Shown here piece after piece: positions 59,172 through 63,942 of a DNA stretch of 64,000 nt (position 1 is its first letter; every line of letters begins with the position of its first letter). A program made the translations under genes and the position numbers. The notes under the pieces were generated by a model. The model was not told where the DNA came from. It saw nothing but the letters and a program-made list of their open reading frames with translations, and did no database searches. Origin of the DNA: Piromyces finnis finn (lineage: Eukaryota > Fungi > Neocallimastigomycota); assembly GCA_002104945.1 (NCBI GenBank), contig MCFH01000009.1:434001-498000 (forward strand), read 5' to 3'.

Positions 59172-61715
59172 ATGTCAAACGAAATTCAGGATAATGGATG
59201 GAGATTTGCTCAATGTTTCGGTGAAAAGGGCGATCTTGAAGAAATAAATGAAGGTATTATTTAATATGAATAAAAAGAACAGAAAAATATATTTATCAAT
59301 AAAATAAGACTATTTCAAGCATTCGTATAATGATAATGATAATAATAAAGAAAAGCATAAATAGTTACCATTTTCAATGTATCATCCATTTCAATTTTAT
59401 GTATAATCCATGACAGTAATAAAAAAAAATAAAAAATATTATTATTTTTTAGTAAATATATAAGAATTATAAAAAGAAATAAATTTACTTAATTGTCCAT
59501 AACATAAATATCATAAAAATAATAAAAATTAATTTATTAGCCGGATAAATATTTGAATTTTAAAATATATAAAAAAAAAAGACTTTAATAAATATATAAA
59601 TATTTTAAAGTAGATAAAATATAATTTATTAAAATAAAATAATTATTTTTTACTAAAAAATAAAAATAGCCGATATTATTTCTGCAGTTGAATTTGATGA
59701 AACCGGTGATTATTTAGCTACTGGTGATAAGGGTGGTAGAGTTGTTTTATTCGAACGTAATGACACAGTATGTATTTTATAAAAAAAAAATTATAATTAA
59801 AATATAATCATTGATTTATTTAATTAAAAGTGTTAAAAATAACAAACTTAACATTTAAAATCAATAAATAATTTAAACCAAAATTAAAAAATAAATTATA
59901 TTTTCTAAAATCTAAATAATGAATAGAAAAAGAAATGTGAATATAAATTCTATACTGAATTCCAATCTCACGAACCAGAATTTGATTACTTAAAAAGTTT
60001 AGAAATTGAAGAAAAAATTAATAAAATTCGTTGGTGTAAAAGACAAAATGCTGCTCACTTCTTATTATCTACTAATGGTAATTTATTAAAATATTTAATT
60101 CTTTTTAAAATTAGATATAATATTAAAAATTTAATAACTTATAAATTATAAACTTCTAAACAATTAATTTAAAAAAATAATATATATAATACGCTTCACA
60201 ATATTTTATTTGATTTTTAAAAATAATATTTTCCAAAAAATATAAATCAATATTATAAATATATGAATAAATAATTATTAGATAAGACAATTAAATTATG
60301 GAAGGTTTTTGAAAAATCAATTAAAGTTGTTTCCGAAAATAACTTATCTGATGGAATGCAAAAGCCAACTTCCTTTACTAAAGAAAGTTTAAAATTACCA
60401 ACTTTAATTCACCATGATACCATTATTACTGCTGTTCCAAGAAAAATATATCAAAATGCACACACTTATCATATTAACTCTATATCTGTCAATTCTGATG
60501 GTGAAAGTTATCTTTCTGCTGATGATTTAAGAATTAACTTATGGAATTTAGAAATTTCAAACCAAAGTTTCAGTATCCTTTTTTCATAATTATATTTCTA
60601 TTATTTATAAATAATATTTTTTACAATAATTTATAATAATCATTTTATAAAGAAAGTTATTATTTTTCTTAATTTCTTTTTTTTTTTTTTTAATAATTTT
60701 AAGATATTTTGGATATTAAGCCAGTAAATATGGAAGAACTTACTGAAGTTATTACAGCTGTAGAATTCCATCCAACTCATTGTAATACCTTTTTATACAG
60801 TAGTAGTAAGGGTACTATTAAAATCGGTGATATGAGAGCCGCTGCTCTTTGTGATCAACATGCTAAAGGTATTTATATATATATATATATAATTTACATA
60901 TTTAATTAAAAAAATATATATATTTAATAAGATTTATTAATATTAAATAATTATCATTATTTTAAAAATGAAAAATAAACAGTATACGGTGAGGATGATG
61001 ATAGTACCAACAAGACTTTCTTCTCTGAAATTATTTCATCTATATCTGATGTCAAATTTAGTCCAAATGGTCGTCACATTATTTCAAGAGATTATCTTAC
61101 TTTAAAGATTTGGGATGTTAACATGGAATCAAAACCAGTTCAAACTATCTTAATTCATGATTTAAGAAACAAACTTTGTGACTTATATGAAAGTGATTCA
61201 ATCTTTGATAAATTCGAATGTACTATGGATGGTACAGGACTGTATCCTTTTTCTATTTATATATATATAAATATTATTGCTATTATTATTACTTTTATCG
61301 TTCAAAATTAAAATATTATAATTATCACTTAACCAATCTTTTTACCATAAAATAATATATAAAATATTAAATATTAAAAATCATTTCAAATTCATATTTT
61401 TCATCATTTGATTTATAAATAAATAGTAACATATTAAGTGGTTCTTACAGTAATTACTTCCATGTATATAATCATGAAACTGAAAATGATATAGTATTAC
61501 AAGCTGATAAGAGTGTATTCCAAACTAAATACACTGGATCCGTAAAGAACAAGGGTCTTGAATGCCAAGTTTCACCACAAAAACGTGAAGAATTATACTA
61601 CAACATTAACTCCTTAGATTACAACAAAAAGATATTACAAGCTTCATGGCATCCAAAGGAAAATATTGTTGCTCTTGCTGCTACAAATAATTTATTCTTA
61701 TTCCAAAAAGTTTAA
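59172..61715 (+). CDS. CDC55: Protein phosphatase 2A B55 regulatory subunit, 7 exons, two U12-type introns
   Basis: [134 protein letters not shown]. Confidence 0.98.
60573..60703 (+). other. U12-type (minor) GT-AG intron in PP2A-B55
   Basis: Donor |GTATCCTTTT; TTTCTTAAT branch-like site at 60665-60673; splicing restores QSFNILDIKP. Confidence 0.85.
61242..61426 (+). other. U12-type (minor) GT-AG intron in PP2A-B55
   Basis: Donor |GTATCCTTTT; splicing at AAATAG|T restores [16 protein letters not shown]. The branch site is less clear (CACTTAAC 61326-61333 is distant; TCATTTGAT is near the 3' end). Confidence 0.75.
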
Positions 61716-62486
61716 AATCGATTTTTAAAAACTGAAATCAACCTGATTAATCAAAAGCATTACATTCATTCAAAAACATATATATATATAATATATATAA
61801 ATTGAAAGAAAGAAAAAAAGAAAGAAAGAAAAAAAAAAAAAAAAGTTAATAGTAAAAAAAAGTAATATATATAAAAAAAAAATGCTATAAAAATATATAT
61901 TAATAATAATACATTTTATTTATTATTATTAATTGGAATGAAAAAAAAAATTTTAGAATAATTTATATAAATATATTTTAATAATATAAATAAAAAAAAA
62001 GGTTAAAAAAATTAATAATAAAAATAATAATAATAACAATAATAATAAAAGCATAATTATAATGTATATTTAATAAATATGTTTTTATAATAATTATATA
62101 TAAAAAAAAATAAATAAAAAAAAATAAAAAAATAATAATAATAAATAAATAAATTTATATATATATAAAAAAAAAAATTAATTATTATAATAGAATTTTA
62201 TAAAACATGTAAAAAAAAAAAAAGGTAGAAATATAATAATATGTAACCCTATTTTTTTATATATATCTTGGAATTTCTTTTGGCGAAAATCTTTCAATTT
62301 CTAGTTTTATCAAAACTGTACAAAAAATATATATATATAGAAATCATTATACTCCTTTAAAAACCTTTTCACCAGTAACTATTATTGATATAGGAAGAAT
62401 ATATTCCTTCCTTCTACATTAAACACAAATAAAATAATTTTTTAATTATACAAAGAAGAAAAAAAAAAATTACTTTAAAATATATA

Positions 62487-62487
<1 letters not shown>

Positions 62488-62577
<90 letters not shown>
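62488..62577. repeat. (TTA)n microsatellite, ~30 units
   Basis: Perfect run between the convergent 3' ends of CDC55 and RPC1. Confidence 0.97.
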
Positions 62578-63063
62578 TTATTTATATTCAATAGTTTTTA
62601 TTTTTAATGAAATGGGGAAAAAAAATCTATAAAATTTTTTGTTATAAAAAATATATATTATATTTAATATTAATAAATAAAAATTTTTTATAAAATTATA
62701 CATAAATAGTTTAAAAAAAAAAAAAATACAAATTTTTAACAAAAGGAAAAAATGAAAATAGGTTGTTTGATTTATGTATATATATTATATATTTAAAAAT
62801 AAAATAAAAAAAAATCACTATTTAAATAGTTAAAAAATAATTGAATATATAAAAGAATAAATCATTTTAAATGTGTAAAAGTTTTGTATAAAAAAATTAT
62901 TTCTATTCTCTATAAATTATTCTTTTATATTATCATTTAAAAAAATTTTTTTATTTTGTTTTTCTAATGTAAATTAAAGATTATATATATTTTTGATATT
63001 ATCTTTTCTGTAGAAATGTAGAAATGAATAAATCTAGTTTTATATAGCTTTGTCTTTATGTTT

Positions 63064-63942
63064 TTATAATCTTAAATGATGAGTTTGACTGTCAAATAAT
63101 AAGTTATGTGGTTTTGGTAATTCTTTCTCTGTCGTATTAAAATTAAAAAAAAAAAAAAAAAAAAAGGTTAAGGAAAATAAAATATATTTATATTATGATA
63201 ATTAATAAATTTAAATAATAATATATATATTAAAAAGTTATAATAATTATTATTATTATATAAAAAGGATATTTTTGAAGTAATTTAAATATGCCTGTTC
63301 CAACATGCATTGGTATACCCATAATAACACATTCACTAACACCATCAATAGAATCTTTCTTGCCATAGAAAGAAGCATCAAAAAGATGATCAGTAGTCTT
63401 TTCAAATGAAGCCAACATTAATACACTATCCTTCATCTTAGCAATACCAAAACGAGTAATACCTAAAATTTCACCCTTGAAGGTCATCAAATCACTAAGA
63501 AGCATACAATGACGGAAATCTAATTGCATACCGTGGCTTTGCATAGTATATTGAATTTCCTTAATAATAGAATTTCTATATAAAGAGTAAAAAGGAAAAA
63601 AAAAAAAAAAAAAAAAAGAATGAGATATACATTTTTAAATAATCGATTTAACATTGCTATAATAAATATATTTACCTAGCAGCTTCAATACCCAATACTT
63701 GTTGCATTTCAATAATATGATTTGTTGAGGATTCTAAACCATTAACACCTAATAATAATATATACGAATTATATGTTTAATTATATGAAACTATTATAGA
63801 AGGCTAATTTTTTCTCTTCGCTTTTACCATTATTTACTTACCATCAATAGCCATAACTTCTCTTAAACCATAACCTTCGACGAGTAATTTCAATCCATCC
63901 TTTTCTTCATTAATAACTGCACGATTAATAGAAGGAATGCCC
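63064..63942 (-). CDS. RPC1: RNA polymerase III largest subunit, 3' exons only (gene continues beyond the window)
   Basis: [109 protein letters not shown]; last exon reached through an AT-AC intron. Confidence 0.96.
63134..63272 (-). other. U12-type AT-AC intron (last intron of RPC1)
   Basis: Minus strand: CAA AA|ATATCCTTTTT (starts 63272) ... TTTTCCTTAAC (63177-63167) ... T-tract ... TAATAC|G (ends 63134); the in-frame join gives a plausible RPC1 C-terminus. Confidence 0.92.

Follow-up and report, generated by a model that had tools for sequence, protein, structure and literature searches.

Two adjacent housekeeping genes of the gut fungus Piromyces finnis, encoding the B55 regulatory subunit of PP2A and RPC1, the largest subunit of RNA polymerase III, very probably contain three genuine introns of the minor (U12) class, with a variant spacing between branch box and acceptor, and these form a local sampling cluster in a genome where the density of such introns is ordinary. 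The genes are convergent, B55 on the + strand and RPC1 on the - strand, and occupy positions 59172-63942 of a stretch of 64,000 nucleotides (nt) of contig MCFH01000009.1 (434,001 to 498,000; G000:C222:434001-498000 in the genome as analysed, which comprises 56.46 Mb in 232 contigs). This stretch is referred to below as the window.

That P. finnis has minor introns and minor small nuclear RNAs (snRNAs) is already published: it is listed as having both, along with Neocallimastix californiae (PMC10639083), although the main text of that paper gives neither a count nor an analysis of branch distances for gut fungi. The literature on minor introns in the Neocallimastigomycota as a group, in PPP2R2A or in POLR3A yielded nothing usable. 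With minor splicing in this organism already on record, and with an initial suggestion of unusually high density failing (see below), the locus is ordinary on that count, and part of its value lies in three ancient minor introns, two in B55 and one in RPC1, that are well supported and come with comparative evidence.

The introns of B55 and RPC1

The window holds three introns with U12 signatures at the positions where a first-pass annotation of the sequence had placed them, within 3 kb and in two adjacent convergent genes. Two are GT-AG introns of B55 sharing the donor GTATCCTTTT: U12-1 (60573-60703, + strand, 131 nt, phase 1) interrupts ..SNQSF|NILDIKP, and U12-2 (61242-61426, + strand, 185 nt, phase 2) interrupts ..DGTGL|NILSGSY. 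The third is an AT-AC intron of RPC1 (63134-63272, - strand, 139 nt, phase 2), with the donor ATATCCTTTT and a 3' end reading ..AATAC, whose removal joins ..FKLLQ-K to a 22-residue C-terminus followed by a stop codon. All three donors fit the consensus /RTATCCTTT, the termini are AT-AC or GT-AG, and the reading frame is restored in each case when the intron is taken out. The phases (1, 2 and 2) are in line with the tendency, already known, of minor introns to avoid phase 0 (PMC10639083). Judged against the branch consensus TTCCTTRAY, the AT-AC intron has an exact match, TTCCTTAAC (63167-63175, - strand), followed by a poly-T run; U12-1 has TTCTTAAT (60666-60673, + strand), followed by a T-rich run; and U12-2 has TCACTTAAC, in a distal box of 13 nt, TTATCACTTAACC (61323-61335, + strand).

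Both B55 junctions have RNA-level support, from a relative, because a metagenome contig of 2304 nt (Ga0352978_1001619, here L005), a B55 transcript that lacks introns and comes from a related gut fungus, aligns block by block with the exons of the window at about 90-93% nucleotide identity, and the alignment blocks stop exactly at 60572|60704 and 61241|61427. The same transcript is informative on all six junctions of the B55 gene.

The signals of these introns are also conserved at the level of genomic DNA. Protein searches were made exon by exon, and the contigs of relatives were likewise reached through individual exons, no spliced model having been joined. One such contig (L112, 10.3 kb) is syntenic, B55 again converging with RPC1, and the only three RTATCCTT sites in it are exactly the three orthologous donors. 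The B55 donors, both GTATCCTTTT, are kept in L112 and in a further contig, L114, and the RPC1 donor is kept in L085-L088; in three close relatives the open reading frames (ORFs) run ..FKLLQK|YPF, that is, into a ATATCCTTT donor. Across L085-L088, L112 and L114, donor 9-10-mers and branch boxes are conserved while the remainder of each intron diverges. In the case of the AT-AC intron, the branch box is kept in L085, L086, L087 and L088, in relatives as TATCCTTAAC or TATCTTTAAC (compare TTCCTTAAC in the window), and in L086, L087, L088 and L112 the donor, the branch box and the acceptor AATAC|GACAGAG are all conserved around a diverged interior, the length of the intron ranging from 139 to 460 nt among the window and its relatives. 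The homologue of the U12-1 branch box is TCCTTAAT in both L112 and L114. The U12-2 box is the same at 13 of 13 nt in the window and L112, amid intron sequence that has diverged, and the homologous place in L114 reads ACCTTAACC, with ACCTTAAC where the window has TCACTTAAC.

Might the three motif matches nevertheless be chance look-alikes at ordinary introns, with no minor splicing at the locus? Two observations would suit such an explanation: RTATCCTT is not enriched across the window (11 sites, against 8.2 expected by chance), and near-matches to the branch consensus are plentiful in AT-rich DNA (the GC content of the window is about 19%). However, the only three of those 11 sites that lie at an exon-to-intron boundary are the three donors, the other eight having shown no intron context on inspection; the RPC1 intron, being AT-AC, cannot be of the ordinary GT-AG kind, and its removal restores a conserved C-terminus; relatives share the donors and branch boxes, as described above; the same position in B55 carries a U12-type intron in distant fungi; and four minor snRNAs are present in the genome. 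Coincidence is on this evidence hardly credible. Two further leads in the window, found with a relaxed donor pattern at 35492 (- strand) and 17783 (+ strand), were read and rejected as having exonic or antisense context.

The C-terminus just mentioned is encoded by a terminal RPC1 exon (63064-63133, - strand), which, from its translation, supplies (K), 22 residues and the stop codon. It is kept in L086, L087 and L088, and in an alignment with the C-terminal tail of P0013, an RPC1 fragment from a different organism, 10 of 18 residues are identical (E 5e-6). Used alone as a query against solved structures, the 22-residue exon gave no match.

The comparison can be taken beyond the gut fungi. Every B55 ORF recovered from other fungi ends ..QSF|S, and hence has an intron at the U12-1 position. 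That intron is U12-type (GTATCCTT, at the same codon position) in the distant fungi represented by L015, L059, L060 and P0246, and U2-type (GTAAGT, GTATGT, GTGAGT etc.) in the remaining fungi recovered. The pattern is as would be expected for old intron positions that changed class where minor splicing was lost or reduced, the direction of change being one that we infer from the class-conversion model (PMC7367187). The B55 positions, U2-type in most other fungi, would in this way illustrate class conversion, and the three introns of the window are old ones, retained in conserved housekeeping genes. They resemble the U12 introns of animals and plants in having an RTATCCTTT donor, AT-AC or GT-AG termini and a TCCTTAAY-type box to which U12 snRNA is complementary, and also in avoiding phase 0, in residing in old information-processing genes and in there often being more than one per gene (PMC3584512, PMC7367187). 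Minor introns are present in mouse Ppp2r2b, Ppp2r2c and Ppp2r2d (PMC8848931), so the same PP2A-B55 family carries them there too, the likeness being at the level of the gene family.

RNAs of the minor spliceosome

All four minor snRNAs, U11, U12, U4atac and U6atac, are encoded in the genome. The scores of U12 (66.6 bits) and U6atac (52.1 bits) are over the Rfam cut-offs, and those of U11 (38.2 bits, cut-off 39) and U4atac (49.2 bits, cut-off 53) fall just under them. The presence of all four genes supports the view that the lineage has a working minor-splicing system. From established knowledge of the minor spliceosome, the paired U11/U12 small nuclear ribonucleoproteins (di-snRNP) would read the RTATCCTTT donor together with a TCCTTAAY-like branch box, and the U4atac and U6atac of this genome would complete the machinery. 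In this lineage the acceptor may be chosen as the first suitable dinucleotide past the branch rather than at a set short distance, the filler between them being AT- or T-rich and of variable length.

At the U11 locus (L002:1380-1618; G000:C152, about 317393-317631), stem-loop III and the Sm site are conserved. The 5' end is canonical, AAAAAGGGCUUAUG (AAAAAGGGC), and is found 121 nt upstream of L002:1501, where the Rfam match begins, with AT-rich hairpins between, and the 239-nt stretch as a whole has a folding z of -4.8; it seems that the U11 of this fungus has expanded to about 235 nt. About 550 nt from U11 there is a candidate C/D-box small nucleolar RNA resembling SNORD14 (L002:2162-2325, - strand; 52 bits, cut-off 64).

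In the U12 snRNA (L001:1501-1676; G000:C189:428380-428555, - strand), the box that binds the branch site is AAGGAUAA, compared with AAGGAAAA in the consensus. Among the branch boxes of gut-fungus relatives ATCCTTAAY is frequent, which would amount to a change that matches AAGGAUAA. U6atac has a sole locus in the genome (L003:1501-1649; G000:C112:211500-211648).

Distance between branch box and acceptor

In textbook U12 introns the branch site has an optimum distance of 11-13 nt from the acceptor, and there is no polypyrimidine tract (PMC3584512). The introns described here depart from this. Counted from the branch A up to the final base of the intron, the spacing in U12-1 is 31 nt in the window, 44 nt in L112, 86 nt in L114 and 25 nt in the distant fungus L060; in U12-2 it is 94 nt in the window, 88 nt in L112 and 136 nt in L114; and in the AT-AC intron it is 34 nt in the window and 13-15, 29, 36 and 42 nt in relatives. 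Unlike the animal and plant introns, those of the window have spacings of 31, 94 and 34 nt (13-136 nt in relatives), and two of the three have a T-rich tract (spacer T fraction 0.79 and 0.84). On account of this spacing and these tracts, we class them as variants of the U12 type. Long and variable spacing appears to be conserved as a trait across the related species, and may represent a lineage-specific variant of U12 introns.

How might an acceptor be recognized at such distances? In ten gut-fungus introns, with 590 nt between box and acceptor in total, this stretch contained no AG (in GT-AG introns) and no AC (in AT-AC introns), compared with about six predicted by the upstream parts of these introns, the ten introns belonging to three orthologous families and being hence non-independent. 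From this we infer that the acceptor may be the first AG or AC downstream of the branch box, whatever the distance, and if this is true AT-rich slippage could stretch the spacer freely. A more general proposal, to which we give an even chance, is that the minor spliceosome of gut fungi has lost strict spacing, the acceptor being the next AG or AC after a box that can lie between 13 nt and over 130 nt further upstream, and that classifiers confined to the last 55 nt undercount its introns. The program intronIC scores the branch only in the zone -55..-5 (PMC7367187), so it would assign no branch score to U12-2, whose sole box is 94 nt from the 3' end, and some undercounting of minor introns in this genome is plausible. 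Should branch mapping confirm long and variable spacing, a textbook constraint of U12 splicing would be challenged, and it would become clear why introns of this sort, in lineages rich in AT, may escape tools limited to the last 55 nt.

U12-2, with the most distant box of the three in the window, invites a different explanation, in which it is not minor-spliced but is U2-type or hybrid, for example midway in class conversion, with a YTRAY branch near its 3' end. In keeping with this, there is no TCCTTAAY-like box in its last 55 nt; ACTAAT is found about 27-31 nt from the end in two relatives; many fungi have a U2-type donor (GTAAGT, GTACGT) at the exact position and phase; and components of the major spliceosome can act on some mammalian minor introns (PMC8848931). 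But the window copy lacks the proximal ACTAAT, the donor GTATCCTTTT is identical in three species, with a CC at +5/+6 that fits U1 poorly, and all three species have a box containing CTTAACC 88-136 nt from the end, amid diverged sequence; moreover, no AG intervenes between box and acceptor in the window, L112 or L114, and stretched spacing is common to both of the other introns of the window. We consider a U2-type or hybrid U12-2 unlikely, and regard it as a minor intron with a distal branch box.

Genome-wide frequency and gene setting

The first-pass annotation had put the minor introns of the window at three of 75-80 (about 4%), which agrees with a segmentation of the window into GC islands (123 of them exon-like, with 94 gaps of intron size); the local U12 share is thus about 3-4% (three of roughly 75-95 introns). 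From this figure it had raised the possibility of a high density in the lineage, with the caution that a small, clustered sample gives no genome estimate. The only known case of the density implied by 4% is the expansion in Physarum polycephalum (cited in PMC10639083). If the window were representative, the lineage would have an exceptional density of several per cent, as in Physarum, and apart from the local share such a reading could call on the fact that classifiers looking only at the last 55 nt would miss introns with distal branches (PMC7367187). It is however at odds with what is found elsewhere in the genome, to the point of being very improbable. In an independent sample of 200 kb (C1:200001-400000), which has 398 GC islands and 30 RTATCCTT sites, no credible U12 intron was found among the roughly 318 gaps of intron size, where a density of 4% would predict about 12-13; with zero observed, the 95% Poisson limit is 3, or less than 0.94%. 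(Three RTATCCTT sites in the sample passed on context and were rejected, one of them lying 4 nt inside a GTAAAT donor and the other two being antisense or without an open frame.) Among fungi, the highest published density is 0.554% (n=249), in another species, Basidiobolus meristosporus, the figure for Rhizophagus irregularis being 0.272% (n=205) (PMC10639083).

Counts of the donor motif in the whole genome point in the same direction. There are only some 2,600 RTATCCTTT sites (516 of GTATCCTTT and 2095 of ATATCCTTT), mostly repeat copies, exonic, or without exon context. Raw counts set against a reversed-pattern control (516/267, 2095/1298, 469/280) seemed to show enrichment, which was misleading and was set aside: retroelement copies contribute to them, and a scrambled core is equally frequent. 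Repeat families with a coding ATATCCTTT inflate the motif counts (for example at G000:C1:109613, C1:116365 and C47:889-24883), one of these families being a segment of retroelement reverse transcriptase and another an element that is present as many tandem copies on C47. When the donor 9-mer is required to have TCCTTAAC no more than 400 nt downstream, only 24 distinct loci remain in 56 Mb (chance would give about 12), and 22 of these are of the AT type.

An approximate number of minor introns was obtained by classifying donor sites on context. A donor filter (T at +10 plus eight A/T bases) left 60 GT and 307 AT sites, and 287 sites with the scrambled core TAATCCTTTT passed under the same filter. 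Exon-like upstream context was then judged by eye on 80-nt rows: it was clear in 11 and weak in eight of the 60 GT rows, clear in 21 and weak in about 10 of the first 100 AT rows, and clear in about eight and weak in five of 100 control rows; in an objective version of the filter, composition-matched controls pass at 12%. Subtraction of the control and rough corrections (0.83 for the end letters of the pattern; recall taken as about 0.75 for AT sites and about 0.3 for GT sites) lead to roughly 65-90 AT-AC and 25-45 GT-AG introns, or about 110-160 minor introns if imperfect donors are allowed; the genome-wide number is put at roughly 100-160 (generous range 60-300). For the denominator, 10,992 gene models (PMC6004548) with about five introns each give about 55,000 introns, and the rate of GC gaps gives up to about 85,000. 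Minor introns would then make up about 0.1-0.3%, or generously 0.1-0.5%, of 55,000-85,000 introns, well short of a Physarum-like density (more than about 1%).

It follows from these figures that a 64-kb window would have about 0.15 minor introns, and that windows with at least three would number about 0.5 among roughly 900-1000, or in round terms about one in the genome, and more than this in practice, since U12 introns cluster within genes, as found in 21 of 21 genomes tested (PMC7367187). The local 4% is a chance or sampling cluster, which needs no special explanation, and the density in the genome is ordinary, similar to that of human or Rhizophagus. As in other early-diverging fungi (PMC10639083), an ancestral complement has been retained, at the same order of magnitude (0.1-0.5% here); unlike Physarum, P. 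finnis has an ordinary density and no sign of expansion, and its introns are at ancient conserved positions. The idea of the first-pass annotation that the lineage has a rich set of U12 introns is partly supported: a real and sizeable set, mostly AT-AC, exists beside the four snRNAs, whereas the high density supposed with it gives way to a share well below 1%. By these rough counts the complement, a hundred introns or more in order of magnitude, is fairly large by fungal standards.

In human, about 26% of minor introns are AT-AC, and in most species GT-AG minor introns outnumber AT-AC ones, Blastocystis being reportedly an exception to this excess. Our rough counts give AT-AC to GT-AG minor introns as about 2-4 to 1, so that, unlike in human, the AT-AC kind is the more numerous here. 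Elsewhere in the genome, G000:C46:82806 and C46:83217 (+ strand) have donor candidates ATATCCTTTT and GTATCCTTTT, about 400 nt apart, each with a YYCTTAAY box within about 110 nt and the second preceded by sequence that clearly resembles an exon; the pair may belong to a further gene with two introns of the minor class.

Several points weigh against the joint reading of genuine minor introns at ordinary density. The human U6atac segment corresponding to GAAAGGAGAGA pairs with donor positions +5 to +9, and the single U6atac of this genome has GAGCCGAGAGA in place of that consensus, while its donors are still RTATCCTTT. In the window, neither U12-1 (TTCTTAAT) nor U12-2 (TCACTTAAC) has a perfect branch box, and U12-2 is without any branch box in the last 55 nt, at a position where, in the exact phase, many other fungi have a U2-type intron. 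The RNA support comes from a relative rather than from this organism, and the branch sites are assigned from sequence. As for the density, raw motif counts are not enriched over the scrambled core, so the estimate hangs on the classification of context, which was partly by eye and used rough recall values, and may be out by a factor of two either way.

The B55 gene itself (59173-61715, + strand) has seven exons, at 59173-59252, 59672-59769, 59927-60079, 60282-60572, 60704-60868, 60983-61241 and 61427-61715 (stop codon included), of which exon 6 corresponds to residues 271-353 of 447 of PP2A B55-alpha (E 1e-31). Of RPC1, the window contains the 3' part (63273-63942, - strand, upstream of the terminal exon described above), with exons at 63942-63830, 63748-63674 and 63575-63273, the gene running past the end of the window; the stretch 63574-63275 corresponds to residues 1266-1363 of 1390 of human RPC1 (E 1e-47) and 1334-1431 of 1460 of yeast RPC1. 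An Rfam scan of the window gave no match. A long (ATT)n microsatellite (62486-62580) lies in the 1.3-kb spacer that separates the convergent genes, and poly-A and poly-T runs are frequent around both.

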